Assembly (NCBI RefSeq): GCF_006345805.1
Contig: NC_043026.1
Location: forward strand, 4,712,001-4,776,000
Reading direction: 5' to 3'
DNA from: Octopus sinensis
Lineage: Eukaryota
DNA: 64,000 bases
Part shown: positions 6,312 to 40,119 of the stretch, one piece after another
How positions within the stretch are numbered: the first letter of the stretch is position 1
Layout: the number at the start of each line of letters is the position of its first letter
Position numbers and translations under genes: made by a program
The notes under the pieces: generated by a model
What the model saw: the letters and a program-made list of their open reading frames with translations, nothing else
Databases searched by the model: none
Told to the model about the DNA's origin: nothing

Positions 6312-6629
6312 TCAGAGAAGAAACTGGATTTGTAACCGACAAACAGGGAATCTCTCCCGATTAAGCTGAAATAAACCTTCAACATACAATTTATTTCTGT
6401 GACTTCCAATAAATCTCGGCCCTTTACTGTTTATACAGCTAAAGCCCACTTTACATTTATAAATTCTTTCATTTAAATATATTTTGCTGTGGTCACCAGT
6501 CTGTGTGAAACACACCATGTTGTTAAATATACCATAGAGATGATATCTTTTCTCATCAACTGTAATGTTGCTATGAATACTGATATACTTTGTATATTTT
6601 GTATATTTTGTATATTTTGTCCCTCTGTC
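6312..6629 (-). pseudogene. Truncated paralog fragment of the 1801-aa propeller gene (end of repeat 4 and the linker to repeat 5)
   Basis: NMVCFTQTGDHSKIYLNERIYKCKVGFSCINSKGPRFIGSHRNKLYVEGLFQLNRERFPVCRLQ aligns to aa 1184-1252 (NILCLTQNGEYERIFLNKRIYKDEVNISSIDCKGPRFVGSSRKGMRWNELYVEGLFMVNRDSFPVARLQ) with 38/64 identities by manual count. Bounded by stops at both ends. Confidence 0.85.
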
Positions 6630-8040
6630 TTATCTCATGGTGCGACACGAACACTTAACGTGGTTTTTATAGTCAGAGTTTCGACTGCTAATTTGGTACG
6701 GTGGAGGTGAGATGTGCAACGGAAGAAATTGCAGCCTCACTGGCTACCACTGTACTAAGAGCCGAAAAATTTATAATGTGGCCCTCATACAAGGGAAGAA
6801 GAGGGGTCCGGGTTAAAATCCCGAATATACCCCCAGAAGTGAAAACAGAATGGCTGGCAACAGCTATTCTAGGAGCAGCAGAAGAGGAAGTGGAGGTGGA
6901 ATCCTTTAAGGAGTCCAACGCGGTAAACTGGAGAGGATATGGGGTAGAACTGTGTTTGATGGCCACAAAAGAGGACATTGAAAGGTTCCCCTACAGAATA
7001 GAAATTGAAGATGAGAAAACCCTCAGTGTAATTGTAGAGGGAAGAAAACCAAACTGTTACCTGTGCGGGACAAGGGGGCACATTAAAAAAGAGTGCCCGT
7101 TATACGAATTCGTAGCGGAGTGCGAGCAGGAACTTGAAGAAAAGAAGAATACGGTAAATGAAAAAGAAAACATAGAAAAGGAAACAAAACAACAAGAGAA
7201 AGGAAATAATAAGTCAATGAAGGAAAAAGAAATAAAAGAAAAGAAAGAAATAGAACCAAAACAGAGTCAGGAAAAAAAAAAGGAAAAAGAACCAACAGGA
7301 AAAAATCAAGAGAAAGATCAGAATCAAACGAAAAGAAAAGACGGCACACAAAAAGAAAAAGAAAAGGAACATAAAACACGAGAGAAAGAGAGAACAGACA
7401 AAGAACCAAAAAGACAAGAGAAGGAAGAAGAAAGAAAAGAAAGCAAAAAGAGAGAAAGAGAGAAACAAAGAGAGGAGAACAAGGAAGAAATAAGCCCAAA
7501 AAGAAAAACGAAGGAAAACGTAGGACGGAAACAAGATTACTGCTTCTACAAGTTAATAACCTTCCATTTCTGCCCCGAAATGAAAGACTTGACATGTAAT
7601 ACGGAGGGACATATATGGGTCAACAGGATGACCGATCAGTGGCAGGAGACTGCTCTAATCCCCGAAGAAAGAGTCGCTGAGTTCCTCAGAGCTGCCGGAG
7701 AGAGTGTAATATTTTACACGAGTGTTCGAGTGAGAGAGCGGCTGCCTGAGGGCTCAGTGATTGACTTTAGAGAATTGAAAGCCATTATGGAATACGTATA
7801 GAATTGTGAGAAGAGAGAGAAGAAAGAAGAAAAAAAAAAGAAAATTTTGTGAAATATATGTGACGAAAATGTAACCTCTCGATTCCGGGGATCGAGTGGG
7901 CATTTACATCTCATTGTAAATATTCTTTCATATGTCATTTTTTACTTTTATTTTTTCCTTTTCTTGTCATTCGCTTTCTTATTTTAAGTTCCCCGACTGT
8001 ACTGTCCCATCTATGTTCGCCCCTTGTGGGTAGTAATAAA
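6620..8040 (+). mobile_element. Putative ORF1-only non-autonomous retroelement (HAL1-like) with SINE-like 3' tail
   Basis: Carries the CCHC ORF, a 3' hairpin CTCGAT-tccgggg-ATCGAG (~7877-7895) and a tail 8003-8036 matching the SINE tail at 44387-44425 (reverse complement), ending in AATAAA. No TSD seen; boundaries approximate. Confidence 0.5.
6701..7801 (+). CDS. ORF1/gag-like protein (RRM-like segment, CCHC zinc knuckle, K/E-rich linker, C-terminal domain); L1/Tx1-ORF1 or ZCCHC3-like
   Basis: 366-codon open frame (GTG start in the track; first ATG at codon 26). RVKIPNIPPEV resembles an ORF1 RRM-like strand. CYLCGTRGHIKKEC fits C-x2-C-x4-H-x4-C. Strong purine skew. No endonuclease/RT ORF follows. 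Confidence 0.72.
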   Translation: MEVRCATEEIAASLATTVLRAEKFIMWPSYKGRRGVRVKIPNIPPEVKTEWLATAILGAAEEEVEVESFKESNAVNWRGYGVELCLMATKEDIERFPYRIEIEDEKTLSVIVEGRKPNCYLCGTRGHIKKECPLYEFVAECEQELEEKKNTVNEKENIEKETKQQEKGNNKSMKEKEIKEKKEIEPKQSQEKKKEKEPTGKNQEKDQNQTKRKDGTQKEKEKEHKTREKERTDKEPKRQEKEEERKESKKREREKQREENKEEISPKRKTKENVGRKQDYCFYKLITFHFCPEMKDLTCNTEGHIWVNRMTDQWQETALIPEERVAEFLRAAGESVIFYTSVRVRERLPEGSVIDFRELKAIMEYV

Positions 8041-9880: not shown

Positions 9881-10044
9881 AACCCCCAACAGCAACAACA
9901 ACAACAACAACCCTACGAGGACGAAAGGCAATGTTTGTGCATGTGTGCAGTTGGAATGTCACTGCAACAACAACAACAACAATCTATTCTTATTAAACGT
10001 TAAAAACTGTCAGATGCAGACTGCACACACGCACACACAACGCT

Positions 10045-10170
10045 GATGACGATGACGATGATGGTGATGATGATGATGATGACGACGATGATGATGATGA
10101 TGACGATGATGATGGCGATGATGGTGATGATGATGACGATGATGATGACCACGACGACGACGACGGCGGC
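10045..10170. repeat. (GAT/GAC)n trinucleotide microsatellite downstream of the propeller gene
   Basis: Direct observation; source of the poly-Ser artefact ORF at 9993-10319. Confidence 0.9.
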
Positions 10171-10541
10171 GGTGGTCGTCTGCCTTTTAATGGAGAATCA
10201 ATGATTATGAAAGTCTCTGCTTTCGGACCAGACATTCCTATACATACATGCATGCGTATATATATATATATAGATATACACACACAAACATACATACTTA
10301 TAGCCTTATTTCTATACATACATTCCTAAATATGTGTGTATATATATATAAACACATGTGTATATACTGTATATAAATATACACACACAAAGAGAGAGTG
10401 TTGAGGAATGTTACAACAATAAGTGTTAGTGTGTAGAATGCAATGTATGCGATGCAGGTTCGATTCCTGGGTGAAGCCATTTACAACAACAACAACAATA
10501 AGAAGAAGAAGAAGATTGAAGTTTAATATTTCTGGAAATAT

Positions 10542-13500
10542 TTATTTGTCAAAATAAAAGAAAGCAAAAGATTGACGTCCAGGAATAATTCCAAAAACCA
10601 TCAAAGAATTGTCTGAAACATCCAAACCAAGAACTTCATCGACTTCATTATCATCCCCTCTGAGGAGTAAATATTTTGGATTATCTTTTGATCTCAGGAT
10701 TTCAATATCTTCAGATGCTTCCTCTTCAATATGTCGAGGTATTTCGTAAATATTGTTTATTAAATCTGTTATATAAACACATTCACCAATTATGGTCAGA
10801 CGAGGTCTTGCAATATAATATTCCGGATTAATAAATATTTCTTCTTCTATTCTTATCTTCCTCACCAAAGACTTTTCCCTGAACCATTCAACAAAACACA
10901 AAACATCCCAATCTCCAGACTCCTTCTCCTCCATCTCCCTCCTCAAAACAACAACATCACCAAAAGATGTGACTCCCACATCTTCCACCCCTTCATCTCC
11001 CTTCAACCTTCCCCGTCTCCCCACCTTCCCACGACACACTTCATCTTTACATTTCCCATCTTTGATATCAACCACATCTACATAATAAGGGTCAAAGATG
11101 TAGGAGTCATTGCAAATATAGTAATACTTGTTGTTCGCCCATATTCTTTGGTATTTCTTGTCTCTCTCTTCTTGAGTTATGTCTCTAATATAATGACCAC
11201 CACACACGAGTTGATTGTCGTTGTATTTATAAATCCTGTTGTAGTATTTCTCAGTTCTGATGGTTTTTAAACGACGGAGATCCCTGTTGAAGACCCTCAT
11301 TTCTCTCCCAAAGGTGACAATGAAACATTCCTCTGTCCACCGACATATGTCCAGTGGTGGTCGTTGTTGTTGTTCATGTTGAAGTATGTCCACTGTTGTT
11401 GTTGTTGTTGTTCTGATTAATGTGACACTTTCTCGAAACATCAACACACTCACATTCTCATCTAACTTAATTAGTTTACTGTTCCGGTCCCTAATATCCC
11501 CACAATCATAATCAACAGGTTCCTCGATTGCAGGAATGGAAAAAGGGACCATTGCTGTTCTATATGGAAGTCTCCTCACTGATATTTCATCAATTCCTGA
11601 ATTATTAATCTCCGCTATGTAATTACCACATCTCACCTTTAATCTACCTTTACCAATTATTTCACCTGATTTACCTCCTCTTCTTCCTCCCCCATCTCCA
11701 TCTCCTCCTCTGTATTCCAATTTATTAATTAATTCATTACTGAATATTTCCTTGTTCGTTTCAGATGTAATGGAAGGGAAACGAAGACCAGAATCAAGAT
11801 TTAATAACGACACAGATTCCAGAATGTTCACTTGGTCCCCATCAATCTTTATGCAATGACATTCAATCAATTCATTATGTACACACCAGTAAATACCCGC
11901 CACTTTTCTCCATATTACACCATAAGGGATGAGACTCGACCAAACTTGAGATGTCTGCAAATCTTCTCCATTCAGTTGAAATATTTCTTTCCTTTTAGGA
12001 ACCGTGGCCATTATGTGTGATTCTTGTGTAAAACACACACCACCAACTAAACTTGCAACATTTCTGTGACATAGCAACTGGCCGTCTTCATCGAATATTT
12101 TAACATTTCCATTATTGGCTTTTTCACACACAACTGTCTTTCCTTCCTCAGAGACATCAAAATCTTTTACTTGAACAGGACATTCGTCTGTTTGTAAACG
12201 AGCAACCGGGAAGCTGTCTCGATTCACCATAAACAACCCTTCAACATACAATTCATTCCATCTCATTCCCTTCCTGGAGCTTCCAACAAACCTTGGTCCT
12301 TTACAGTCTATACTGGAGATATTTACTTCATCTTTATAAATTCTTTTATTTAAAAATATTCTCTCGTATTCCCCATTCTGGGTCAAACACAAAATGTTTC
12401 GATATCCAAATGAACCTAAATATTTCTCCCACCGACCATGAATGTACAAAAAACTGTCATCGATTGTCATCCTGTCAACACCACCAAAATACTGCATGTA
12501 GTGTCTGACTGAATGTAAATATTGACCACCACTGTTGAAGAAAATGATGAATCTTTCGTTGAAGACAATGATGACATCTTCATCAGTAACTTTAATATCC
12601 TGGATTGTATCAAAATAATTTCCATCTTCTCTTCTTTTTATTAATGGTTCAGGTATGTCTATTTGTTTTATTTCCTTCACACTCGAATGTATTTCATCAA
12701 TATCAACAAAATGCAAATGTCTTCCATCTCTCCGTTCACTAAAAACCAGTTGATTGTTTGAGAAAGAAGCCACACATTCATAATTATTTCTCGTTTGGTA
12801 AATTACCCACGACAATGGAAATTCCACTTTTAATGTCAACAGTTGGTGTTTATTATCATCTTCAGGATCCCAATTCGTAATGACCAGTGTGTTTGACTGC
12901 CATCGACACATTTTAATATATCTATAAACATTCACTTTGATTGAATCCAATAGGTGACCATCCAATGTGAATGTCTTAATGTTTCCATTCCTCTCGTCCC
13001 ATCCTGCAATCAGATTATTTTCAGTAAGAACCAAAGATTCAATCTTCGCTGGTTCTTTGTCTTCCAAATGTTCAGGGAGAGGAATATGTCTGGCTTTATC
13101 AGAAACTGTCAGGTCCTGTAGATATAAAGTGGAAGACAACATTTCACTGAGAGAAATGTTTCTTGAAAATACATCCACCAGGTCGATATAATAATTAAGT
13201 TGATTATTAGTAACGAGATCATTAACCAACAAATTCTGATCGTTTATGGCAAACATACGGCTTCTGTCTATCAGATAAACAGACGTTTGGTCAATAGATC
13301 CACATTGGAGACTGAGGGGACGTTTCACTTGGGACATTAAAACACTGGGGACCATCTGACGACTACCATGACCACCACCACCTATTCTAGTGTTGTACTG
13401 AAAAGCTTTTCCTCTAGTAACAATTAATAGCTTTTCTGTTTTCTTGTCTATTGATAATGATTTCACAAACACAGGGATATTAATTGTCTTAATTACTTCG

Positions 13501-15947
13501 ACTTGATTATAATAATTGATGGCTAAAATGTCTAAATGTGATGGTTTATCACAATAACAAACAATTTCACCTTCACCCATCTTACACACCCGTACATAAG
13601 GCTGCCTTAATGATACACTTCTCACTGTCTTTGATAGGTTTCCGATCACTCTTAATTGTTTCTGTAGGGGTAATGTGACCCCTATATGATTAGAATCCCA
13701 TCGACATATATCTGTAGCTGTAGACGGCAGAGATAATCTGGACACAATGTCTCCTTCCTCAGAAATGTACAACAAGTAATCATGGTTGATGTCGGACACC
13801 ACCAACTGTCCATTGGACAGATTACATATTTCGCCAATGACAAGTTTTTGGTCATTCTCCTTTTCTTTGAGTCGTAGATTTAGATTTCTGATATAAGGAC
13901 TTTTCGTGGGTAAACGGCAGCCAGACGACCGGTCTTGATACTTGTAAAGAAGAACCCTGTTGAGTTGAGTGTCCGGGACATAAAGAGTTCCTTGGAAAAC
14001 AGCTATGTGAGGGTGAACAGGGAAAGGCAGTTCCCACTGCCATTTCATTTGTCCATATAGATCGTAACATCTGAGAATAGAGTGTCTCCTGAAGAGGACA
14101 TAGAAATAAACATTATCAGAGTAGATGTGATGAGGGTAGCCATAGAATGGAAGGTACTTTTGAAAAAGTTCTTCACCACATGTGGAATAAAATACCATTT
14201 TATTTTCGCTTCCATCTACGACTACAAAATTAATTGGAGTTGCAGCAATGCTGACATTATGATCTCCCAGAGAAATTCTTTCTGCAATGTCAACTTTATC
14301 TTTGTGGATCAAGAGAATATGGACCTCACTTTTGTTTCCACTTGTGGTTAGAGCTAAACACTTATTTGATACAACATGACATAGTTTAATGTAATCAGTA
14401 TGGACTTTCATTAAAGGGCCTTTCATTAGCCCAGGGTATGTGATACACTGAAATTCTTTGCTTTCACGGTAAAACACCAGAAATCCTTTAGAATTCATTC
14501 TACAAAAGTAAGAAGGAATCTCAAGGAAAGTTGAATTATTTTGGTTAATTATTTCTCCAGTCTCAGTGAATAATATAGCTTTATTATTCCTGTAGAATAT
14601 TAATATAGAAGATGTAGACATAGGTAGAATATTAGTAATGTTGTAGCAGTCTTCAATATAAATATAGCTGTTCAATGTTGGGGTCCATAGCTGGGGGTTA
14701 TATGACTGCCTGGTCCAAAAGTCTTCATTTGTTCCAATGATATGAAGGACATCAAAATAATTGGTTACAAAAATATTTTCTCTGCCAACAGAAATATGGC
14801 GGCATTTCATGCCAATTTCTCTTGTTGTCACAGCACCTGTACCTGATATCCGATAAATAATATGTCCCTGAAGGACATAAAAATGGTTTTGGTAGACAGA
14901 GATGTGGCTTGGAATGTCCAGGGAATTGGTATCCACCTCAAATAACTGCTGGCCATCCACATTGTAACAGGTAACCCTGTTAATATTGGAAAAGGATACT
15001 AAGAGTTTATTTTGTGCTCCTACAGCAATATCTGAAGGGGTTTCTTTGGTTATGAATTCGTATTTTATTCTATTCTCTTCCCAGTCAATGACGTATATGG
15101 TCCGACCAAACATTTCTACACCTATAAGCGTAGAATGTTTCAAATAAGAAACCAAGATTAATCCTAGCTGAATTCTTTTGATTTCAAAACTTAAAGGGTT
15201 GATAATAAGAATCATCCTTCGAAATGGGAGGGTGGCCAGGACTGTGTCTTCACTGATTCTAGTAAAATCAGTGACAGAAGATGAGCAATGAACTTCATTT
15301 CTGTTGCCGTCTCTTGTTATACAACATATTGTCATAAAGTGGCGAGAATATGTTACAATACCCCCTTGTATGACAACGATATTGGATATTGGGTTGCTTA
15401 AGTCTTCACCAGATTCCTCAATCTCTACTTCTCTGGTCACAACTGGCCGAAGAGGACGAAATTTTGTGGTTACTTTTGGTGGTTCAATGGTCTTGTGGTT
15501 GTATGGGTTACAGGTGACATAAATGTCAAAGAGTCTTTGTTGAAACCAATCAAGGTTTTGGTGAACAAAATCATTATTTTGTTTTGCAAATTCCAGAAAT
15601 CTTGGCATTTTACGTTTGATATTACGTAAAATTCGAGATCCATTTAAACCCAGAGAGTGCATGTGATTACATTTATCCTTTACATAATCTATAAACGTAT
15701 TGATGTGGTCTGATTTGATTTGTGTTCGGTAACATGTCACAATATGAAGGAAACTTGGTAACATGAACTTTTCCTGTTCTTTAGATTTCTTTGTGTCTTT
15801 TCTTTCCTGTTCTTCTGTTTTCTTTGTGTTTTGTGTATGTAATATTTGGGTAAGAATTGGTGTAGTTTCCTTATAAATTGCTGTTGTATCACAGACTGTG
15901 GCAGGAATGAGAGCCAACATTTTGTTTTCTTCATTAATCTTCTCCAT
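10542..15947 (-). CDS. Large uninterrupted ORF (1801 aa): N-terminal helical region plus about six tandem NHL/TolB-like six-bladed beta-propellers (molluscan TRIM-C-terminus-like), no RING/B-box
   Basis: 5.4 kb stop-free in AT-rich DNA. ATG in AAAATGG context with an in-frame TAA 5 codons upstream. AATAAA overlaps the stop. A repeat-start motif recurs at aa ~186, 437, 704, 969, 1260 and 1489, e.g. IGEICNLSNGQLVVSDINHDYLLYISEEGDIVSRLSLPSTATDICRWDSNHIGVTLPLQKQL, VKDFDVSEEGKTVVCEKANNGNVKIFDEDG, PPLDICRWTEECFIVTF. Domain call is by eye. Confidence 0.88.
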   Translation of the reverse strand: MEKINEENKMLALIPATVCDTTAIYKETTPILTQILHTQNTKKTEEQERKDTKKSKEQEKFMLPSFLHIVTCYRTQIKSDHINTFIDYVKDKCNHMHSLGLNGSRILRNIKRKMPRFLEFAKQNNDFVHQNLDWFQQRLFDIYVTCNPYNHKTIEPPKVTTKFRPLRPVVTREVEIEESGEDLSNPISNIVVIQGGIVTYSRHFMTICCITRDGNRNEVHCSSSVTDFTRISEDTVLATLPFRRMILIINPLSFEIKRIQLGLILVSYLKHSTLIGVEMFGRTIYVIDWEENRIKYEFITKETPSDIAVGAQNKLLVSFSNINRVTCYNVDGQQLFEVDTNSLDIPSHISVYQNHFYVLQGHIIYRISGTGAVTTREIGMKCRHISVGRENIFVTNYFDVLHIIGTNEDFWTRQSYNPQLWTPTLNSYIYIEDCYNITNILPMSTSSILIFYRNNKAILFTETGEIINQNNSTFLEIPSYFCRMNSKGFLVFYRESKEFQCITYPGLMKGPLMKVHTDYIKLCHVVSNKCLALTTSGNKSEVHILLIHKDKVDIAERISLGDHNVSIAATPINFVVVDGSENKMVFYSTCGEELFQKYLPFYGYPHHIYSDNVYFYVLFRRHSILRCYDLYGQMKWQWELPFPVHPHIAVFQGTLYVPDTQLNRVLLYKYQDRSSGCRLPTKSPYIRNLNLRLKEKENDQKLVIGEICNLSNGQLVVSDINHDYLLYISEEGDIVSRLSLPSTATDICRWDSNHIGVTLPLQKQLRVIGNLSKTVRSVSLRQPYVRVCKMGEGEIVCYCDKPSHLDILAINYYNQVEVIKTINIPVFVKSLSIDKKTEKLLIVTRGKAFQYNTRIGGGGHGSRQMVPSVLMSQVKRPLSLQCGSIDQTSVYLIDRSRMFAINDQNLLVNDLVTNNQLNYYIDLVDVFSRNISLSEMLSSTLYLQDLTVSDKARHIPLPEHLEDKEPAKIESLVLTENNLIAGWDERNGNIKTFTLDGHLLDSIKVNVYRYIKMCRWQSNTLVITNWDPEDDNKHQLLTLKVEFPLSWVIYQTRNNYECVASFSNNQLVFSERRDGRHLHFVDIDEIHSSVKEIKQIDIPEPLIKRREDGNYFDTIQDIKVTDEDVIIVFNERFIIFFNSGGQYLHSVRHYMQYFGGVDRMTIDDSFLYIHGRWEKYLGSFGYRNILCLTQNGEYERIFLNKRIYKDEVNISSIDCKGPRFVGSSRKGMRWNELYVEGLFMVNRDSFPVARLQTDECPVQVKDFDVSEEGKTVVCEKANNGNVKIFDEDGQLLCHRNVASLVGGVCFTQESHIMATVPKRKEIFQLNGEDLQTSQVWSSLIPYGVIWRKVAGIYWCVHNELIECHCIKIDGDQVNILESVSLLNLDSGLRFPSITSETNKEIFSNELINKLEYRGGDGDGGGRRGGKSGEIIGKGRLKVRCGNYIAEINNSGIDEISVRRLPYRTAMVPFSIPAIEEPVDYDCGDIRDRNSKLIKLDENVSVLMFRESVTLIRTTTTTTVDILQHEQQQRPPLDICRWTEECFIVTFGREMRVFNRDLRRLKTIRTEKYYNRIYKYNDNQLVCGGHYIRDITQEERDKKYQRIWANNKYYYICNDSYIFDPYYVDVVDIKDGKCKDEVCRGKVGRRGRLKGDEGVEDVGVTSFGDVVVLRREMEEKESGDWDVLCFVEWFREKSLVRKIRIEEEIFINPEYYIARPRLTIIGECVYITDLINNIYEIPRHIEEEASEDIEILRSKDNPKYLLLRGDDNEVDEVLGLDVSDNSLMVFGIIPGRQSFAFFYFDK

Positions 15948-16365
15948 TTTATGAATATAGAATTATTATCTTTTTCTGTTAAATATATTCTTTTCTGTGG
16001 ATTTTGTTTTCTTCCTTTGGAATACAATTTATCTCTTCAAAATTCACTAATTTTTACATGAAAGCTGAAATTAAATGAAAACTTTATTAGTTTTGTGAAA
16101 AGCTTTTGATAAAATAATATTTACTTGATTCAATCAAAGAATTTCAAGGAAAACACACATTTCATTAAATACATTAAACAAATTGTTTATTTGACAGTGA
16201 AGTTAAACATTTAAACTGTTTTCAATGGAATAATCATTAGAAATAACACTTGAAGATATAAATACACCATTATCTTTATTGACTGAATATAAGTGATGGT
16301 GAAAAGTTTTGTAGTAAGAAGGAATATAAATATTTTGTTGAGGTTATTTCTACAGATATTATCAG

Positions 16366-16554
16366 TAGAAATTATAGCCAGGACTGATTTCCTGCTACAA
16401 CATTTCATATCGAAATGTCAGACAGAAACAAACAATGAGATCAAAGAGAAAAACATCTGTTGTTTGTTCTCATTGTTTATCTCATTGTTTGTTTACATCT
16501 GACATCTCGATAGGAAAGGTTTTAGCAAAAAATCAGAGCCAACTATAATTTCTA
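16366..16554 (-). ncRNA. Long imperfect RNA hairpin (76-nt arms, 37-nt loop) upstream of the propeller ORF
   Basis: Arms 16366-16441 and 16479-16554 are 62/76 identical as an inverted repeat. All 8 transitions form G-U pairs on the minus strand (70/76 paired). Confidence 0.55.
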
Positions 16555-18030
16555 TGGAATATCAATAGAATAATGTGAAAAACACTGCTAACAAAGTAGA
16601 ATGTGGTGTTGACTTCTAAAACGATTTAATATATTTTACAGGAATTTATGGTTGCATAATGAAATACCACGTCCCTACAAATCAGGAATATAAGTATTAT
16701 TAATAATTATATGCACTGGAAATGATGTGACAGTCATGGTTGGCTTGGTTTCCATCATATTTACTTGGATTAACAGATACCAATAAAGCTGGAGATGAAA
16801 CTGTTCTTAACCTGACAAATGCTGTAAATCTCTCAACATTTCAATATAATCCACACAATTATCATACACAACATTGATTAACTCGGAAAGCTTATCCAAA
16901 GATGGGCTTTCATATAATCACACTGATAGACAGCATGTTGAGAGGATCGTTATTATTTGTTGCTGATTGAGATCATAAAGATTGGTTAATGAATAAGCCC
17001 AATTAATGAAAGGTAGGTTCACCTTAATTATCTTTAATATAAGGGACAATGTTTGGGTAGCAATGAGAAAGATGTGTTTGTATGAAAAAGGGGTTTGGCA
17101 GGTGAAGTGTGTTTTGTTTTGTGTTAGGTGAGGAGTTATAACTTGGTGTAGTTTATTATGAAGTATTGGGGGTTTAATGAGGTGGATTAGGAAATATTGG
17201 TGGGGGTGTTTAATGACATTCTGGTGACCCATCATCATCAGAATGATCCTCCTTGGTCTATGAAATAATGACTGTTACTCTATTGACCCCAGGAGGAATG
17301 AAAAATAAAAGAGACCTTCTTCAGGATATACATACATATATATGTATATATGATAGAATGAATGTGTATAATATATACACAAGGATGCACATATGTATAT
17401 TTATACATCGATACGTCTGTATGTATGTATGATGATCATCATTTTACTCCCACTTTCCATGCTGGAATGGGTTGGATGGTTCAAAGAATATCTTGCCTGA
17501 AGTTACATTTTCTGGTTTTCTTTCTGCAGCTGGATGCTCTTCCTGACACCAACCACTGCACAATGTGCACTGGGTGCATCTTATGGCACCATCACTAGAG
17601 ACAATCGCCATGTCCTTGACAAAACTAAAGGTTACCCTCAATCTCTGGGTTTCACATATACCTTGGAATGTGTGAGAGATCTAGGGTAATAAATATATGA
17701 AAAGGAGTGGCTGAGTGTTGGGGAGAGACCCAGATACGTCCAGTAACATCCCTAGTTTCATTGGAAGAATGGTGAAGAGAAGAGATTTACTGCCAATCTT
17801 TGTCACAGCAGTAAGATAGTAGAGTAAAAAGAAGAAGAGAGAGTGATTGAGAGATGAAAGATAGAGGTGGGGGTGATAGGGGCGTGGCAGTAGGGACTCA
17901 AGGTCCGAGAGTTGACACTCATCAAACTGGTTTTTGGAGGTCTGGGAATATACCTCTAAAGAACCAGTTTGATAAGTGCCAATTAACGAAACTTTCGGAT
18001 CTTGGGTCACTTTGTTACTTCTGCTAAATA

Positions 18031-19520: not shown

Positions 19521-20754
19521 ATATACATACATACACATATACATAAATGGACATATGTAAATATATGAATATACCTTCACATACCCGTGTATAAATATTT
19601 GTGTCTATGTATGTTTTTAGATATGAATCAATGAATGACAAAAGAACAAGAGTTACGTAGACACCTTCATTAGCTTCCAGCTGTTTCTGCTACAGGAAGC
19701 AGTGAACTCGAGCTGAGTGTGTGTGCGCGTAGGTGTCTGTGCATTTGTTTATGTTTGCAATCTCTTTTAAGTTGCTCCAAGCAGAAACATCTGTCAACCA
19801 ATCACCCCCGCCTCGGAAGACATGGGAAATAAGAACTTTTGTTCTTGCAAAATGGTTTTGGGTAAGCAATAGGAAGGCTGTCTGTCTGTAAAACAAGGCT
19901 ACAATAATATATTCACCTAACCCATGCTAGCATACAAAATCAGATGTACAATCAAACATAAGTAAACCAATGTTTATTCATTCAGATACTCTTATGCACG
20001 CATAAACACACACACACACACACACACGTGTATGTGTGCATCTGGTGTTAAGAAGATCATCCAGCTGTAGAAATCTTGCCAAATCTTTCATTGGAGCTCA
20101 GCAATGTCCTCTGGTTCACTGCTTCCTCGTCAACTGTCCTACCCATGCCAGTTAGGGAAAATGGATGTGAAAACCTTTATAATACATTAGATGATGTATT
20201 TTCTTTTCTGTATTTTCTTTCTAATAATTTTGTTTTGTTTTTTGCCAGGTTCTTGTGAGTCCCACTCAGTCAAGTCTATGACTACACTCGATGAGGCTCA
20301 CCAATCGTCAGCTGGTTTCAAGCAAGAGAATATTTCCCCAAGTTCTTCCAACATGAACAGCACAATGGTTGGATATGTTTTCTGGTGGAACACTGCAAAC
20401 AAACGACTCTGTTTGTGTGACGTGACATTTGTTTATAATTCGCAGCAGATGTCAAGACAAGGAGACATGAGCAGACATACACACACACACACACACACAC
20501 ACATGCATACACATACAAGTACAAATGTAGATATGCATACATGAATATACACACACATGTATATACCATAGGCTTTATCAGTTCCATGTATGAAACCCAT
20601 TCACAAGGCTTGAGTCAACCTGGAACATTAGAAGAAGTTAATTCTTTAAGGTGCTGCAAAGTGGGACTGAACTTGAGACCACAAGGTTATGAAGTGAGTT
20701 TCTTAACCATACAGCCATGCCCCCCAACTTTTTTTGGTAATATTTTGAAGATAA

Positions 20755-21349
20755 TAATAATCCTTTCTACTATAGGCATAAGGCCTGAAATTTTGGGTAT
20801 GGGCACTAATTGATTACATCACCCCCAGCCCCTAACTGGTTCTTATTTTATCAATCCCAAAAGGACGAGGGGCAAAATCAACCTTGGTGGAATTTGAACT
20901 CAAAATGTAAACTTGGAAGAAATGATGCAAAGTATTTTGTCTGCCATTTTGTAACAATTCTGCTTGTTCATCACATTAATAATAATAATAATAAGAAGAA
21001 GAAGAAGAAGAAGAATATCAATAACTATAACAATAACAACATCAATAATAATAATATTAGCAGCAGCAGCAAAAACAACAACAACAGCAATGATTTCTTT
21101 TATTTTCTTTTAATATAATAAAAATGATTTCAAGTTTTGGCACAAGGCCAGCAAGTTCAAGGAAGGGTCCAGTCTATTACACTGACCCCAGTACTCAACT
21201 AGTACTTAATTTATCGATTCCCAAAAGGATGAGAGGCTAGGTCAACCTTGGTGGAATTTGAACTCAGAATGTAAAGATGGACAAAATGCCGCTCAACATT
21301 TTGCTTTGCATCCTCACAATTCTGCCAGCACGTCACAGTAATTATAATG

Positions 21350-21383
<34 letters not shown>

Positions 21384-21800
21384 TAATAATAATAATAATA
21401 CTTTCTTGCTATAGGCACAAGGCCTGAAATTTGGAGTGAGGGGACTAGTAAATTACATCGCTTCCAGTGCATAGCTGGAACTTATTGAATCGACCCCAAA
21501 AGGATGAAAGGCAAAGTTGACCTTGGTGGAATTTGAACTCAGAATGTAGTGGCAGATGAGTCATAATAATAATAATAATAATGGCTTTAAATTTTAACAG
21601 AAGGCCAGCTTGTTCTGGAGAGCAGGTAAATTGATTACATCGACCCCAGAACTCAAAAGGTACTTATTTTATTGACCCCAAAAGGATGAAGGTTGATGCC
21701 GGCAAAATTTAAACTCAGAGCGTTAAAGGCAAACAAATAGCTGCCTAGCATTTTGCCCAGCATGCTAACGATTCTGCCAGCTCACCACCCAAATTATAGT
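20755..21800 (-). mobile_element. Four head-to-tail tRNA-derived SINE copies separated by (AAT)n
   Basis: Repeated ggcacaaggcctgaaatt...gattacatcgacccc...aaaggatgaaaggcaaagt.gaccttggtggaatttgaactcag; the reverse complement has the B-box-like GAGTTCAAATTC. Confidence 0.8.
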
Positions 21801-22054
21801 AATAGTAATTAATAATAATAATGGTAATAGTAATTAATAATAATGATAACAACCCTTCCTTTCCTATTTTATATCCTTCATATGTCCTTCTCTTCTTTTA
21901 CTTTCTTCTCTCTCTCTCTCTTTCTCTCATTCCCTCTCTCCTTTTCAATATCAACTTCAACATTTTATTTCCCTTTTACATAAACATGTATATATTATGT
22001 GTGTGTGTGTATTTATATAGTGTACGTGTATATATGTATATATATTCTTTTATT

Positions 22055-22245
22055 CTTGTACTTGTTTCAGTCATTTCACTGTGGCCATACTGGAGCACTG
22101 CCTTTAGTCAAACAAATTGACCCCAGGACTTATTCTTTGTAAGCCTAGTACTTATTCTATTGCTGTCTTTTGCTGAACTTTTAAGTTAAAGGGATGTAAA
22201 CACACTAACATCGGTTGTCAAGCAATGTTAGTGGGACAAAAATAA
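22055..22245. mobile_element. SINE, second family (representative; further copies at ~39680, 46050, 47520, 55790, 60250)
   Basis: tgtttcagtcatt..actgtggccatactggagca...gacttattctttgtaagcctagtacttattctat recurs through the window. Confidence 0.7.
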
Positions 22246-23769
22246 AGACACAGTTACGTACCTATTTGATTTCTTATCTTAAATTTCTGTAAAATTGATT
22301 TACAAACTTTGAATTTTCCATGAAACATAAAATCTAAAACCTTTTGTCATTAAATATAATTTACATTTTCTTTCTTTAGAATTCATCAAATATTTTTGAA
22401 ATTGTTCAAAAAAATATAAACTTTCTCTTCTTGTAAAAGTATTTGAAATCCTGGACACATTTTTTATAGTTTATAAAATGGTTGGAGGAAATTAGCACAA
22501 ATGTGAAGAGTGTGTGTATATATGTATGTATACAAGTGTGTATCTCTCTCTCACTTTATATATATATATATTCTTTCCATCATTTAATCATTAGTACTTG
22601 CTGTTTAATTAAAATATCAACTCCATTTCCTAATTTAGCTGATCCACAAATAGATTTGGTTAAAATATTTACCGGACTTAAAAAGAAATGCTGGTGCTAA
22701 TACGATCAGTTAAATACATAAAGGCAATGCTCCAGCATGGCCATGGTTCAATAACTAAAGGAGTAAAACACATCAGCCACACATTACATACATAACTTGA
22801 AATCTTTCTACCACCACGACCACCACCATTTAGTCTGTTAATCTATCTCTATAAATGACACAACCTCTCTTCAATTATTATTCATGTCTTTCTCATCCAC
22901 AAATCTACACTTAAAGAAAAAATATATCACTATTCTATTTCTCAACCAAGCTGATAATTCCACACAAATCTCCAAGAATATTTCTAAATTTACCAAATTA
23001 TAACATAGACTATTCCTTCAAATACAATATTTAAATGTAATTTATAAAAATATATCAAAACTATAATCTTTTAAAATTTAATAGGATGTTTAACTTTTAT
23101 AATGTCAGAATACAATTTATAAAGTTGAAATATTAAAATTATTTTTATAAACATTACATTTGAAATGTAACAAATATATTTTGGAGATGTACTTGCATAG
23201 CAAGTGATTTGATCTGAGATCGTGTGCTGGAACGAAAACAATTGCAGCGTGGAAGGTGTTTATAAGCCATTTAAAAAATACACAAAAGCCGTTCGATTCA
23301 CTTCAACATTTAAGTTTAATTTCTCAAAATATTTTCGTCACTAAAATCCGCGACCTGTTCACTGACAAAATTCCGTGCTGCATCTGAGAAAGTAACAGTT
23401 AGTCCGTCATATATATGTACGTATGTATGTGTGTATGTATGTATACACGCATGTATGTACATACATACGCCTGTGTATGTATGTATATATGTATGTGTGT
23501 GTATATGCACGCACATACACACTATAAACATAATGTTATAAACCTGTAGTAATGGATAGATGTAGACTGACCACTCATCACAATAATATCAAATTTCACC
23601 CCCCCCACCGCCAAAACTAGGAAGTGATTTACGACCCTCACCCCCAAAACAAAACCCTAAAACCTATTATCAGACATTTATCTCTATATCACAAAACTTT
23701 TGTTTTGCTATTACTTGTTTTTTTTTCTCCTCCCTACATCTAGTTAGTTCAGGTCAAATATATATACGT

Positions 23770-24563
23770 ATGTATGTGTGTATGTATGTACGTAAGTATG
23801 TATCTATGTATATGTGTATGTACATACATACACATGTGCGTATGTATGTATACGCGCACGTATGTCTGTGCCCATGTATGTGTGTGCGTACATGTACGTG
23901 CGTATGTACGTGTGTATGCCCATACGTAGGTATGTATGTATGTTTGTATTCGTGTGCTACGTAGGTATGTGAGTGTCTAGGTGAATGGGCAGACGCGTCT
24001 GTGGGAGTGTATACATGTGTATGTGTATGTGAACGTATGTCCTTGTACTGGTATGTGTCCGTCCAAGTTGTGTACATGACTGTTACTTTGTTGCATACAT
24101 ACTCACATATATGTTTGTATAGACGCACACACAAATATATATATGTGTGGGTGTGTGTTTGTTCCTCTCATCACTGTGAATGGATACAACGTTTAGGTGC
24201 AACTGTGCACATATAACCATATCCATATACGCAAGTACACACAATCATATAGACACACTCATAAATATACATGTAATCTTAAAATACTCGTATATTCTAA
24301 TCCACTTCTACATACATGTCCTATTACACACACACACACACACACACATAAATATACACACGCACACCAACACACACACGCATACAAAATCCGACACAGT
24401 ATACTATATTTATATATGCATAAACGCATACATATACAATACATCCATATACGTATCAAACAACGTACGCTATAAAAAATTTTTTTTTTTTAAATGCCCA
24501 TACATACACATATGAGCATGTATGGATGTATTGTATATGTATGCGTTTATGCATATATAAATA

Positions 24564-30749: not shown

Positions 30750-30960
30750 GTGCACATATTTATACACAAAAGAGGTGACCTTTAACAGGACACCTTACGT
30801 GCTGGAGAGGGCAGTTAAAGCCCAAACCACAAGAGTAATTTCAAAGGGAATGAAAAATAAAATATTTCTACATTTACCCCTAGACTCGATTTTCTGTATT
30901 AATGTGTAAATAAATTAATTTCCATCTGTGCTTGTGTGTATATATATATGTATATATGTG

Positions 30961-31003
<43 letters not shown>

Positions 31004-31359
31004 AAGTTTATATGTATGTATCCGTCTATATAATAGGTAACTGCACGTACATATACTTAATATTTATTATTTATTTTTTGAGTATGCATGTATGAATAAC
31101 TGCGCGTATATATATTTTACTATTTACTTATTTTTTGAGTATGCATGTAAGTATGAATATAAGGAGGCGCGTGTGTGTGTGTGTATGTGTAAGCATAGAT
31201 ATATGTATACTTTTACGCATGTGTGTACTTATGTGTATATATGGATGCGCGCGTGTGTGTGTGTGTATGGGTACGCATGTACATGTGTATGTGCGTGTAT
31301 GTGTATATGAGTATGTATGTATGTGTGTGCGTATATTTGTATATGTATGTATGTGTGTG

Positions 31360-31412
<53 letters not shown>

Positions 31413-32579
31413 ATGTGTATGTATGTATATGCGTATGTGTATGTATTTGTATGTGTATGCATGCGCGTATATATATGTACGTATATGTATACGTGTGGGT
31501 GTGTGTATGTGTATAAATGTATGTATGTATAGACTAGCCTTCTAAGAGTGTAGACATGAATCTGTAGGTACGCGTACGTATGTGTATATACGTGAATGTA
31601 TGTAGATGTATGTATGTATGAATATAACGCGTGCGTGCGTGTATGTGTATGAGTGTGCGAATGAGTGAGTGTACGTGCTAAAGAGTGTGCGTGAGTAAAT
31701 GAGTGCTTGTTTTCCAGTAGACAGATAAATGGACTGGCTGTCATAGCCAAGATGTTTGTGACCAGCGATCAAAGATAACAAAAGTAATAAATGAAGATAA
31801 TAAAATTAAAATTAGGGAATGGGTCTGTATTTGTATGTGTATATATATGTGTGTATGTGTAGGTATGCATAGGGACACATATGTATATATATATATAATA
31901 TATATATATTATATATATATATATATGTATGTATATGTATGTGTTTGTATATGTGTGTGTATGTGTATATATGTGTATATAGGGACTAGTGTGCTGTGTA
32001 TGCATATGTGTGTGTGGATATGTGTGTGTATGCGTGTATGTGAGTATGTGTGTGTATGTGTATATATATTTTTCTGTGTGTATATGTATGTGTGGTCGTG
32101 TGTGTATATATACATGTGTGTATACGTGTATGCATGTGAGTGTGTGTATGTATACATATATGTGTATGTGTAGATATGTATATGTATGTGTAAGTGTATA
32201 TATATGTATATATGTGTGTGTGTATGTATATGTATATATGTTTGTATGTGTGTGTATATATGTATACATATGTGCATAGGTATAAGTGAGAATCTCCTTA
32301 TTTACCTAAAACTCTATTCCCTTTTTTATATATATTTTTATATATTTTTTATATATTTTTTATTTTTTTATTTATTCTTCTATCTAATTTAACACTGACT
32401 CCTTGACCACTCCCCCAAGTATGATATTTTGCGCTATGCCTACCCCCAAAAAGTCCCCCACCAACACCCCTTTAAACCTGCCTAAATGTATAAATGCCAA
32501 TACAATTCTTGTTAACTAGCTTCCTGAAGATTTCTCTTGAATGAAACAGTTCTAGTCCTGTAGAAGCTCCTTCTATATA

Positions 32580-32630
<51 letters not shown>

Positions 32631-34233
32631 TATATATACACATACATACAGTCACACCCTTTACACCCATGCCTTCCCCCAATACAATCTGGTCCTCCAC
32701 CCCATCTCAACACTTTCCTTTCCTCCTACTTCATGCCCCTCCACTCTCCCTCATATGTCTCCTCACACACATTCACTCTCAATGCCCTCACAGACGTACC
32801 ATGGTCCTCTTAGACACTCCTATATCTCTCCCTCTCATTTGTTACANNNNNNNNNNNNNNNNNNNNNNNNNNNNNNNNNNNNNNNNNNNNNNNNNNNNNN
32901 NNNNNNNNNNNNNNNNNNNNNNNNNNNNNNNNNNNNNNNNNNNNNNTGTTTGTATGTATAATACATTTATGCACATAATGCAAGCTAATTAATTAGTGAG
33001 AGAGTGTAACGCAGTGCCCATAACTTACTCAGTGCCCCAAAACCTAATAATTACGTGAGCAGAATGGTAACAACGTATTACTGGTATTTTGATGTTTTTC
33101 ACTGTCTGGCGAGATTGCTGTGTAAAGTTAGTCTAAATAGTATGTCATGGCTGGAATGTCTTGGCTTCTAGATTTGATGGATCAGGGTTGAGTTGGGGCT
33201 AAACTGCTATAACCACAATAATACGATCTCTCCTCCGGACAGGCACCCATGACCACCACCACTAGCATGGACTATTAGAGAAGAAAGTAGGAAACCTCAC
33301 CCAAATCCACATGGAACAATAAATTTGTAGCTGGCATTCACTGACTTGATCAACAAGCTTGGGGAAGGGAAATGCAGACAGCAACAAAACACCAACAATA
33401 TCACACACACACACACACACACCACCACACCACCACACCACCACCACCACAACACACCACCACCACAAACCATCAAGACCAAAGAAAGAAATTAAATTCA
33501 TGATGTATAAAAGGTTAAAGAATGTTAGAGCTGTTAGAAATAGCAGCCAAATCCCCTTCTAACAACACTATTGTGTCTTAACATAACTTCATACATATTT
33601 ATGTATGTGACCAGTGACAGTTGAATTGTACATGAGGGCTAGAGCTGTTAGAAATAGCAGCCAAATCCCCTTCTAACAACACCATTTTGTCTTAACATAA
33701 CTTCATACATATTTATGTATGTGACCAGTGACAGTTGAATTGTAATGAGACTAGAGCTGTTAGAAAAGCAGCCAATGCCCCTCCAACCTACTGAAATTAA
33801 CTGCAGCTTATAAATTCTATGGCTGTCTTTCAACAAATGAACAACAGGTCCATTAAACTGCAGCACTTCATATGCTAGAAACAACAGCAAGACTTTAGCA
33901 AACATGTATATGAAGACAGAGAAAGAGAAGGGGCAATTTTGATGTAATCACCCCAAACACCCATCATAAACTTTTCCTTTTTGTGAATTTTTAGAAGAGT
34001 TTTGTAAATTTGTTCTAAACACAGGAATTGATACATTTATGCAAAAGTGAAAAGAAAAGATAGTTTTGTGTTTTTTAAGGGCTATTTAGCTGTTATTTTT
34101 AGCATATCGCATGACCACTTGATACCCTCCTTGTTTGTTTCTCACTCTTACGTATTGATGTTTTCATTATCTTTAAATAAATTCCTTTTATGGTCTTTTG
34201 ATGGGATTTAAGCACAAAGTCCAGACTGTCCAT
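28541..34233 (-). CDS. Candidate 4-exon gene, ~121 aa, unknown function (exons 34233-34152, 33874-33788, 28841-28726, 28621-28541)
   Basis: GT-AG junctions with compatible phases (1,1,0) give [121 protein letters not shown]. Strong donors C|GTAAGA and CAG|GTAATT, acceptor ttttattttcag. The exon 2 donor is weak and exon 2 abuts repeats. Confidence 0.4.
30900..32400. repeat. Long compound (TA)/(TG)/(TATG) microsatellite tract
   Basis: Low-complexity sequence; the track ORFs here are YI/VC/TH artefacts. Confidence 0.9.
32505..32585 (+). ncRNA. Single family D hammerhead copy (CTGAAGA core variant)
   Basis: agcttc-CTGAAGA-tttctcttgaat-GAAAC-agttctagtcct-GTA-gaagct at 32518-32568. Confidence 0.6.
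32847..32946. other. Assembly gap (100 N)
   Basis: Run of exactly 100 N. Confidence 1.
33527..33785. repeat. Tandem repeat, unit ~112-114 bp, ~2.3 copies
   Basis: agagctgttagaaatagcagccaaatcccc starts at 33527, 33641 and 33753. Confidence 0.85.
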
Positions 34234-35606
34234 TTTTTAAATTTCAAAATATTAAAACAAGATTTCCTGGAAACTGAAAAACACAAAACTGTTATGAGTG
34301 ATTATATGGGATGCTTCAATCAGAATTCCGACATGGACAAAATATAGAAAGAAGCAGAAAGAAAAATATTTAAATATCTCATGTATCAATGCTTAATGGA
34401 CACTAGACCTGCTGCAAGAAATAGCAGCCAAGTCTCCCTAAATCACAGACCTGTCTCTCTGTGTGTCTGTCTATCTATTATCAGCTCTTCTTCACAGCAT
34501 TTTAGGATCAGATACCTTCCTTGCAACCCTCCTCCGTATTGACATTCAGTCCCAGGGCACCATTTTCTACCATACACATATATGATTATTCTTTGCCTGT
34601 TGGCACAAGGCCTGGAATTCTAGTAGAGGCAGCTAATTGACTCCATCGACCCTGCGTGTGAACGATTCTTCCACCTCACCGGCTTATACACATACACATA
34701 CTGTAACATCTCTCTCTCTCTCTCTGTCACTCTCTCCTTCTCTATCTTTCTATTCATCTATTAATTATGTAATAATTCTCATTTTACATTTAGCACAAGG
34801 ACTGCAATTATTGTGGGCACCTAATCGATTACATTGACCATATTACTTGATTTGTGCTCAATTCATGACCCTGGAACGATTGGATGCAAAGCTACCCTCA
34901 CCAGAATTTGAACTCACAATGTGAAACTACGAAATGTCGTGAATCATTTCCTCTGGCATGTGAGGGATTCTGCAACCACGCTGCCTTATGAACACACACA
35001 CACACACACACATACTATAAACTACAATAATTATATATCATATATAGTTATATTAAATATATGCTTCTAGAAATAGCAGTCAAATCTCCTAAAATCACAC
35101 CATGCTGTGTGTTGTGTATGTTGAAGAAATTAACTGCATTGTAGGAAGGCTCGTTGGAATTACCAGCCAATTAAAGCTCTAATTACAGTGTAATTTTCTA
35201 ATGCATGTATATATGAGGTCATACAGGATCTCTATCTGGTAGCTAGATCACTTTCAGTTATGTTGATTAAACCCCTCCCCTTAAAATTTCTAGCATTCTC
35301 CATAAATGAGGAAAAAAAAATCTATTCTTTCTGAGGGCAGGGAATCGCTTTTTGTATATCTGTGTATATAGTTGTATTGATATTTTCTCTTGTAGAAATA
35401 GCAGTCAAATCCCTTTAAATCACACATTATACTGAAATATTAGCATTGTGACTCGGCTTGTTAGAAATAACATCCAAATCTCCCTCTGAAATTAAACATA
35501 GGAGATGAAAGAGAGAGAAAACAGTGAGAGAGGGAGGAGGACATATAATGATTGAGTGAGAAAGAAGGAGGGATCGCTGGAATAAATACAAGGCTTAACA
35601 AAAATA

Positions 35607-36770: not shown

Positions 36771-36774
36771 CTCT

Positions 36775-38587: not shown

Positions 38588-38621
<34 letters not shown>

Positions 38622-39026
38622 GTATATATATACATTTGAAGTATTGTCCAGGTATATCTAAATGAAGAAGACTAATCAAATTTACAAATGTATTTAAAGG
38701 GTCTGAAACCTAGGTACTAGATTATCCAATTCCGGGTTGTCCATTTATCTAATGTTCTTCCTAGAGGTAAGATGGAAGTCTTTATGTTCCCAGCCTTCAC
38801 GCGTCTTTCCCAGTATATATACACAGTGAAGCTTTACTACAGGGTCGTAAAACTATTGACTGCTATTTCCAGTAAACATTGGTGCCTTGTTGTACCACTA
38901 ATCTATATTTATACTTCTACCTTAACCTCGTGTTTTATTTGACTGGAAAGTAAGACATTTGTTTTGCAATATTTTAATTTTCATTGTGTGCGTGTTGTAT
39001 ATATATATATGTATATATATGAATGT

Positions 39027-39082
<56 letters not shown>

Positions 39083-39119
39083 TATGTATATATATATATG
39101 ATATATATATATATATATC

Positions 39120-39154
<35 letters not shown>

Positions 39155-39159
<5 letters not shown>

Positions 39160-40079: not shown

Positions 40080-40119
<40 letters not shown>

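Follow-up and report, generated by a model that had tools for sequence, protein, structure and literature searches.

What does a stop-free frame of 5.4 kb encode in octopus DNA that is otherwise filled with microsatellites? The question arises from a stretch of 64,000 nucleotides of the Octopus sinensis genome (assembly GCF_006345805.1, contig NC_043026.1, forward-strand positions 4,712,001 to 4,776,000), which we call the window and in whose coordinates we give our positions. On its minus strand, at 10542-15947, the window carries an open reading frame (ORF) of 1801 amino acids (aa). Based on our analysis, we propose that the protein would be a cytosolic chain of six NHL-type β-propellers that works as a ligase-less, multivalent binding scaffold with germline-diversified recognition faces, and that it belongs to a family found only in octopods; we consider this account reasonably probable.

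An uninterrupted 1801-aa ORF at 10542-15947 had been reported in a first-pass annotation of the window, made from the letters alone and silent about the strand; we find it at exactly this place, on the minus strand. It is the longest ORF of the window, the next longest having 366 aa, and the plus strand of the same interval is full of stops on translation. The ORF is complete in a single exon: the ATG lies at 15947, with an in-frame stop 5 codons upstream, and the TAA stop codon at 10542-10544 is followed on its 3' side by hexamers resembling poly(A) signals. Since the window is AT-rich (GC content 31-44%) and microsatellite-rich, a stop-free frame of this length is not a product of chance. 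The Thr6, Gln-rich and Gly-rich runs of the ORF are all in frame, and its intact relatives in O. vulgaris, O. sinensis and O. bimaculoides have 1776-1801 aa.

According to structure models and profile comparisons, the protein consists of six propeller units in tandem. The boundaries claimed in the first pass (aa 170-408, 425-672, 685-947, 952-1242, 1246-1460 and 1470-1800) lie close to the all-β blocks that we obtained with AlphaFold2 (AF2), run separately on the first half (three propellers) and the second half of the protein with 25-sequence alignments: aa 189-405, 424-669, 704-901, 953-1236, ~1239-1459 (at low confidence) and 1462-1801. In the first half, the blocks contain 23, 24 and 19 short strands with a predicted local confidence score (pLDDT) of ~80; in the second half, units 4 (24 strands) and 6 are well predicted, with a predicted template-modelling score of 0.66, from which units 4-6 would seem to be fixed relative to one another. 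The six repeated propellers claimed earlier are thus borne out by all-β models with ~19-30 short strands per unit and by multi-propeller matches of probability 1.0 in Foldseek. When searched against the PDB, the models retrieve tandem-propeller proteins (IFT-A subunits, LRP4/LRP2, DDB1 and Utp21) with E-values (E) of 1e-22 to 1e-11 at 8-11% identity. Because matches at such identity are generic, they confirm the fold and not the propeller subtype. Taking the strand counts of units 1-4 (23, 24, 19 and 24) and unit 6 (~25-30) together with pLDDT of ~70-93, each of these five units is predicted to be a six-bladed-type β-propeller of about six blades, closure being judged from the strand counts, and they are the five of the six that fold confidently in the models.

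The units are also related to one another in sequence. Between units, BLAST of the single sequence against itself gives marginal matches (best 1e-4), and profiles are needed for the repeat to emerge. With unit profiles cut from the family alignment, which is conserved from about aa 150 to the end, hhalign returned profile-profile matches in register for units 3 and 6 (E=8e-7), 4 and 6 (1e-6), 4 and 5 (1.5e-5), 3 and 4 (5e-5), and 2 and 4 (6e-5). The opening signature that the first pass had described for each unit is recognisable in all six and stands out best in units 3, 4, 5 and 6, but a strict regular expression matched unit 3 only; the signature is therefore degenerate and not literal.

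From the N-terminus onwards, propeller 1 (aa 189-405, 14733-15383, minus strand as for the other units) has ~6 blades and is the most constrained of the six. Propeller 2 (aa 424-669, 13941-14678) has 6 blades and pLDDT of ~80-87. Propeller 3 (aa 695-950, 13098-13865) is conserved and bears the canonical opening signature (...GQLVVSDINHDYLLYISEEGDIV...ATDICRWDSNHIGVTLP). Propeller 4 (aa 953-1236, 12240-13091; 6 blades, 23-24 strands) has one hypervariable face. Unit 5 (aa 1246-1465, 11553-12212) is shorter, has pLDDT of 30-45, and is 97-100% identical among O. vulgaris paralogs; it contains a Gly/Arg-rich, RGG-like insert at aa 1411-1436 (11640-11717; EYRGGDGDGGGRRGGKSGEIIGKGRL) that is partly conserved in Argonauta. 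Propeller 6 (aa 1470-1801, 10545-11540) has 6-7 blades with long inserts, is hypervariable, and is predicted with pLDDT of ~80-93.

Preceding the propellers is an N-terminal region (aa 1-150, 15498-15947, minus strand) that is poorly conserved and contains no Pfam domain. In the family it occurs as two unalignable types, type A, which begins 'MEKINEENKML' and includes the window gene, and type B, with ~1 nonsynonymous substitution per nonsynonymous site (dN) between the types. Of additional note, type-B members (loci L004, L005, L006, L007 and L008, from three species) carry, directly before the start codon, a conserved pyrimidine-rich stretch that translates as NFNIFTKLNVFLIFLYRF and resembles the splice acceptor of an untranslated 5' exon; the 5' region of the type-A window gene differs from it.

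To which propeller class do the units belong? The Pfam NHL family (PF01436, gathering score 20 bits) has no match in the ORF or in any of 25 family members even at E≤1, and a PDB search with the ORF by phmmer gave no match; the family profile found weak matches to designed WD40 proteins and sub-threshold matches to TRIM71 and TRIM2 in the PDB. Sub-threshold Pfam matches to other propellers were seen, namely to DUF4934 in 11 members (best E 0.008) and to the fourth propeller of WDR90, while the WD40 repeat family has no Pfam match at threshold in the ORF or the 25 relatives. Since Pfam NHL never matches and profile matches alone link the units to it, the NHL ancestry that we propose is transitive. 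As the first step, we searched 1.84 billion representative proteins with a profile of units 3-6 at a cut-off of E≤1e-3 and obtained 37 matches, of which the strong ones are all family members or fragments of them. The best match outside the family is a 656-aa protein of the cuttlefish Acanthosepion pharaonis (CAE1315789.1; E=2.7e-8) with RING, B-box and NHL. Among the nine weak matches, five more besides this one have NHL repeats, two of these five with a B-box, and two are microbial WD40 proteins that cover only the first blades of unit 5.

As the second step, we aligned each unit profile by hhalign, in the register of the propeller start, with an alignment of five TRIM-like NHL propellers. 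Unit 3 (98.9%, E=1.4e-17, 179 columns), unit 4 (98.1%, E=8.8e-14), unit 5 (96%, E=4e-9, 141 columns) and unit 6 (96%, E=3e-9, 200 columns) all match at 96-99% probability and unit 1 at 81.5% (E=1e-5); the protein thus carries homologues of the six-bladed NHL propeller in six copies, none of which follows a tripartite motif. The molluscan TRIM-like proteins show the opening signature at the start of their propeller as well, and in one of them it reads 'FIVVSDRHSGALKKFGFDGQMLEEFELHSPPHGICLWANYEVVVTLPENKQ'. Finally, the TRIM-like propeller profile, built without any sequence of the octopus family, recovers the solved NHL domains of Thin (7e-25), TRIM3 (7e-23), TRIM71 (1e-21), TRIM2 (3e-21), Brat (1e-15) and Mei-P26 (1e-8). 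It further retrieves a large TRIM-like expansion of more than 70 clusters of single-exon, 400-450-aa proteins with B-box and NHL (ENA ERZ25073280 and ERZ25073293), gastropod RING/B-box/NHL proteins (Haliotis and Gigantopelta, one of them named 'TRIM56-like') and bacterial six-bladed NHL propellers. These clusters and gastropod proteins support the premise of an expanded molluscan TRIM-like/NHL family on which the first-pass annotation relied, and its assignment of the units to a TRIM-type, NHL-like class agrees well with the nearest non-family relative, the in-register alignments and the link to solved TRIM-NHL domains. On these profile alignments, we conclude that the units are NHL-type propellers by transitive homology.

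Membership of the TRIM family is defined by a RING, and by a B-box with a coiled coil, neither of which the ORF has: in keeping with the earlier claim, there is no RING or B-box in the ORF, in its 25 relatives (by Pfam) or elsewhere in the window, and tblastn of TRIM-like N-termini against the window revealed no hidden RING/B-box exon. When compared by hhalign, a profile of the N-terminal aa 1-185 shows no relationship to the N-terminal or coiled-coil regions of TRIM-like proteins (probability <1%). Neither a signal peptide nor a transmembrane segment was detected, as the first pass had also noted (the maximum Kyte-Doolittle mean over 19 residues is 1.36), and from their absence the protein is predicted to be cytosolic. 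Six NHL-type propellers without a ligase module, found only in octopods, make up an architecture as unusual as had been supposed.

How widely is this architecture distributed? In a search of 5.8 billion proteins we found 41 relatives, mostly of 1,600-1,900 aa and 42-100% identical, all from O. vulgaris, O. sinensis or O. bimaculoides; the annotations call them hypothetical or uncharacterized, and Pfam domains occur only in obviously chimeric gene models. One O. vulgaris chromosome of 29.19 Mb (OX597841.1) carries at least 21 clusters at 90% identity (44 models), with copies at 9.57, 10.8-10.9, 21.88-21.93, 22.03 and 22.66 Mb, and copies also occur on a small chromosome in both O. sinensis (15.1 Mb) and O. 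bimaculoides (12.0 Mb). At ~21.9 Mb of OX597841.1, an inverted, frame-broken copy (L004 3903-9061, minus strand), an intact copy (L004 27515-32924, plus strand) and a third copy (L006) lie within ~50 kb and form a local sub-cluster that includes a pseudogene. Intact single-exon ORFs of 1776-1801 codons stand at seven further loci in the three species. Full-length members among the 37 matches in 1.84 billion proteins come from Octopus and Argonauta only. Argonauta hians has two full-length proteins of ~1,915 aa, and since the Argonauta protein is collinear with the ORF from aa 43 to ~1800 at 36% identity, the six-propeller architecture is older than the split between Octopus and Argonauta. A divergent Octopus member on a large chromosome is likewise collinear (31% identity) and shares a 90%-identity cluster with counterparts from O. 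sinensis and O. bimaculoides. No multi-propeller relative from outside the octopods was among the 37 matches, although the searched proteins include the cuttlefish proteome that gave the TRIM-like match. In the searchable literature we found no description of the family, and the O. vulgaris genome and repeat papers contain no relevant mention. It thus appears to be an octopod-only, multicopy and previously undescribed family, known here from genomic sequence alone.

The copies are mosaics of one another. The window is collinear with the 10.9-Mb locus of OX597841.1, at 99-100% identity through most of the gene, which places it in O. vulgaris or an extremely close relative; the reference gene model at this locus is a chimera in which aa 487-1801 of the ORF are fused with retroelement pieces (gag and pol), DUF4371 and a portion of a neighbouring paralog. 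At the closest paralog locus, 95% identity spans ~14.5 kb and reaches well into both flanks, and in other paralogs the similarity starts and stops at differing points. Similarity that extends into the flanks with variable boundaries marks this as segmental duplication and not transposition. Within the gene, sliding identity reveals sharp blocks, with identities among O. vulgaris copies of 97-100% in unit 5 and down to 59-89% in units 4 and 6. Synonymous substitutions per synonymous site (dS) lie at 0.01-0.07 in unit 5 and, within one paralog pair, can be as low as 0.01 (unit 5) and as high as 0.5 (unit 4); which paralog is nearest also differs between units. Taken together, these patterns point to repeated gene conversion or recombination. 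One exchanged block of ~2 kb (14700-16750, minus strand) comprises ~800 bp of upstream sequence, the N-terminus and propeller 1. Relative to the 9.57-Mb paralog it is 98-99% identical in the upstream/N-terminal part and 94-98% across propeller 1, and relative to the 10.9-Mb reference locus merely 40-75%; it is either a haplotype produced by recent gene conversion or recombination, or else an assembly difference. We also considered an origin of the gene as a mobile element and rejected it, finding no long terminal repeats or terminal inverted repeats, no transposition enzyme domains and no consistent copy boundaries.

How selection acts on these copies was estimated by pairwise counting of dN/dS in three comparison sets, namely the three closest paralogs, the O. 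vulgaris copies and all eight genes. The whole-gene dN/dS of 0.43-0.78, together with an excess of nonsynonymous over synonymous differences (N:S) in units 4 and 6, agrees with the first-pass view of a fast-evolving family. The medians for units 1 to 6 are 0.28, 0.43, 0.44, 0.59, 0.61 and 0.73. Purifying selection acts on propellers 1-3 and 5, two of which (3 and 5) appear to have been homogenised among the copies. In the three closest paralogs, dN/dS reaches 1.9-4.1 in units 4 and 6, and 1.9-2.6 in propeller 4 alone, values above 1 that derive from few, non-independent comparisons. The N:S counts in units 4 and 6 are 111:14, 125:14 and 107:9, whereas the remaining four units have 65:50, 190:132 and 158:103 (P between 1e-8 and 5e-12 by Fisher's test).

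The variability of these two propellers is concentrated on one face. Taking strand positions from the AF2 models and per-site entropies from a family alignment of 42 sequences, we found that loop entropy in propeller 4 alternates over 22 consecutive loops between means of 0.64 and 1.97, with 20 of 20 direction changes (permutation P≤5e-6); in propeller 6 the direction changes at 20 of 22 points and the parity slips once, and propellers 1-3 have no such alternating pattern. Since alternate loops of a propeller share the same face, the variability is restricted to one face. In the blade register (strand A 'IESLVL', TENN, strand B 'LIAGWD', ERNG, strand C 'NIKTFT', LDGH, strand D 'LLDSIK', VNVYR), the variable loops would be B-C and D-A, and from the register of NHL blades we infer that they form the conventional top, ligand-binding face. 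In propeller 6, the dN/dS of the variable-face loops is ~11 (79 nonsynonymous to 2 synonymous) in the three closest paralogs, 1.29 in the O. vulgaris copies and 1.10 in all eight genes, compared with ~0.65 for the other-face loops and ~0.7 for the strands (0.82 among the three closest paralogs). In propeller 4, the variable-face loops have values of 1.64, 0.87 and 0.77 for the three sets in the same order; the other-face loops have 0.29-0.33 in the latter two, and dN is 3.5-fold higher in the variable-face than in the other-face loops. Such face-specific hypervariability fits a recognition role and makes the family a credible candidate for a repertoire of this kind, while it does not identify the ligand.

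Based on these findings, we suggest a plausible course of events. The C-terminal NHL propeller of a cephalopod RING/B-box/coiled-coil/NHL gene may have lost its ligase module, and the freed propeller may have multiplied internally to six before Octopus and Argonauta split. In Octopus, the gene would then have spread by segmental duplication, mostly on the smallest chromosomes, with copies that keep exchanging blocks. The protein would be a multivalent binding scaffold without catalytic activity of its own: the conserved propellers could dock constant partners, possibly for self-assembly or for recruiting a separate effector (an E3 ligase, for example), and each paralog could owe a ligand specificity of its own to the diversified faces of propellers 4 and 6. 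The family would thereby constitute a repertoire of intracellular recognition proteins encoded in the germline. As ligand, a target in genetic conflict (a virus, a transposon or another selfish element) would be the most likely kind, which is the least certain step of the scheme; we favour a conflict role as a guess because the evolutionary pattern resembles that of TRIM5α and of the fungal NWD/HET-E proteins.

Carried further, this scheme would make the family an octopod repertoire of intracellular recognition receptors in innate immunity or genome defence, in which two propellers present positively selected, conversion-reshuffled top faces and the conserved ones couple to a common effector; we offer this specific role tentatively, as a possibility that we think somewhat doubtful. 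Expanded families of protocadherins, C2H2 zinc fingers and GPCRs are a known feature of cephalopod genomes, and to our knowledge little is known of lineage-specific recognition or defence genes in cephalopods. Conserved docking modules, two hypervariable binding faces and exchange among paralogs are a signature usual for recognition molecules. If the repertoire exists, it would be a functional analogue of TRIM5, the NLRs and the fungal NWD proteins with a domain architecture undescribed in other animals and, if expressed, a testable candidate for the recognition of intracellular parasites or selfish elements by octopods. The family also offers a putative example of the substrate-binding domain of a TRIM ligase released from its ligase and multiplied into a new scaffold. 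More practically, it accounts for several chimeric gene models in the O. vulgaris annotation, and a large, intact, multicopy family is listed in public annotations merely as 'uncharacterized' or 'hypothetical'.

Several observations weigh against the scaffold that we propose and its diversified faces. As to the propellers themselves, none of the 25 members reaches any Pfam NHL score, unit 2 is linked to TRIM-like NHL weakly (28%, E=6e-4), and unit 5 is not confidently folded by AF2, its first blades matching bacterial and designed WD40 proteins as well (E 2e-4). With isoelectric points (pI) of 5.0-7.7, the propellers are neutral to acidic, whereas Brat and LIN-41 bind RNA through basic faces. 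The reading frame is broken in some copies; near aa 418 this also applies to the reference allele of the ORF, in contrast to the intact window copy. As to selection, the comparisons with dN/dS above 1 come from three sequences only, with a modest per-unit excess over neutrality (P 0.005-0.09). A relaxation of constraint, and not positive selection, could account for much of the pattern in units 4 and 6, except for the 79:2 loop class. The top-face assignment, finally, is inferred from the blade register and not from coordinates.

Three other explanations deserve consideration. The protein could be a post-transcriptional regulator in cell-fate or neuronal processes, its six propellers and Gly/Arg-rich insert forming a multivalent scaffold for mRNA or small RNA in the manner of Brat, LIN-41/TRIM71 and Mei-P26. 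Its putative TRIM-NHL ancestry would agree with this, as solved relatives bind RNA on the top face, which by our blade register may be the very face that varies here, and so would the RGG-like run GGDGDGGGRRGGKSG at aa 1413-1427. The run is, however, only partly conserved in Argonauta, the propeller charge just described lends no support, and more than 20 copies with mosaicism and an overall dN/dS of 0.4-0.8, rising to at least 1 on the binding face, would not be expected of a housekeeping regulator; we therefore regard an RNA-regulatory role as unlikely. In O. vulgaris the copies are concentrated on the 29-Mb chromosome, and in O. sinensis and O. bimaculoides on small ones. Such a distribution instead recalls an ampliconic family in genomic conflict (meiotic-drive or germline-restricted), where competition within the genome on small chromosomes, and not the recognition of ligands from outside, would drive both copy number and change. 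Near-identical copies, gene conversion and haplotype differences are all compatible with such a family, but one divergent member sits on a large chromosome, with counterparts in the two other species, and hypervariability of a single face, which intragenomic competition does not require, points to ligand binding. We judge an ampliconic origin of this kind to be quite improbable.

The long ORF might also have no function, being part of a decaying or neutral multicopy sequence, that is, a pseudogene array or the cargo of a mobile element. The surroundings are indeed rich in transposable elements (fragments of reverse transcriptase and an ORF with a gag zinc knuckle in the window, a retroelement pol near the reference locus); broken frames occur among the copies, the whole-gene dN/dS is fairly high, and the family is so far known from genes. 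Nevertheless, ORFs of 5.4 kb are intact at at least eight loci in three species and the Argonauta protein is collinear with ours, and the copies have no terminal repeats, transposition enzymes or consistent boundaries. Moreover, dN/dS is low in the constrained propellers (medians of 0.28-0.44 in units 1-3), and N:S is strongly non-uniform along the protein, with Fisher P down to 5e-12. This selection pattern largely excludes a neutral or non-functional reading, to which we assign very little weight. We thus continue to favour the ligase-less scaffold with diversified recognition faces.

The surroundings of the gene contain further elements. Directly 3' of the stop codon lies a (TGA)n/(GAT)n microsatellite at 10044-10160, and a stretch resembling the T-arm of a tRNA occurs at ~10470-10500 (GGAATCGAACC), also 3' of the stop; ARAGORN found no tRNA in this stretch, which is probably a fragment of a short interspersed nuclear element. 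On the other side, ~420-600 bp upstream of the ATG, 16366-16554 contains a 90-nt inverted repeat, 78% complementary with a 9-nt spacer, that resembles a miniature inverted-repeat transposable element or may form a hairpin. A relic of another paralog of the family (6330-6527, minus strand; 66 aa) matches aa 1182-1252 at 55% aa identity and is also present in the DNA repeats D7/D8; a gag-like zinc-knuckle ORF (6701-7801, plus strand) adjoins it. A reverse-transcriptase domain at 61130-62685 on the minus strand is divided between two adjacent ORFs (61130-61909 and 61909-62685) and therefore belongs to a degraded retroelement. The intervals 33640-43823 and 51309-59823 both match the same O. vulgaris reference intervals (L003 ~19754-23857 and ~30905-36486), from which it follows that a block of ~10-16 kb is present twice in the window and once in the reference locus.

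In comparison with known systems, the nearest are the TRIM-NHL proteins (TRIM2, TRIM3, TRIM32/Thin, TRIM71/LIN-41, Brat and Mei-P26) and the molluscan RING/B-box/NHL proteins, to whose single C-terminal six-bladed propeller every unit is homologous over its full length. The two-blade opening signature (…hVVSD…G…/…GIC.W….VT.P…) is common to the octopus units and to these proteins, and the cytosolic localisation and ligand-binding top face of TRIM-NHL proteins are predicted for the octopus protein too. In TRIM-NHL proteins the top face serves in RNA or protein binding, and in Brat and LIN-41 it binds RNA. Unlike them, the octopus protein has no RING, no B-box and no detectable coiled coil, and hence presumably no intrinsic E3 activity; it has six propellers instead of one, its units are invisible to Pfam NHL, and it is octopod-only and multicopy.

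In the number of propellers per chain, the octopus protein is closer to DDB1, CPSF160 and SF3B3, with three WD40-like propellers each, and to LRP4/5/6 and LRP1/2, with tandem YWTD propellers, which serve as interaction platforms and give the best structural matches. YWTD propellers share their six-bladed superfamily with NHL propellers. As an adaptor, DDB1 brings substrates to an E3 ligase which it lacks itself, and this may be a functional analogy to the octopus protein. However, at ~8-11% identity there is no relationship to these scaffolds at the sequence level. The LRP propellers are extracellular with EGF modules between them, and the DDB1-type proteins are single-copy, highly conserved, housekeeping and 7-bladed.

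In its evolution, the family recalls diversifying intracellular recognition families such as primate TRIM5α, with its variable B30.2 loops, and the fungal HET-E/NWD STAND proteins, whose hypervariable WD40 repeats evolve in concert. The domains differ, and the octopus protein has no effector module (RING, NACHT or HET); moreover, whole propellers are conserved or variable as units here, and not single repeats. What it appears to share with these families, a likeness drawn from the pattern of sequence change, is a germline repertoire of paralogs, positive or relaxed selection on the binding surface, and the reshuffling of variants by exchange among copies.

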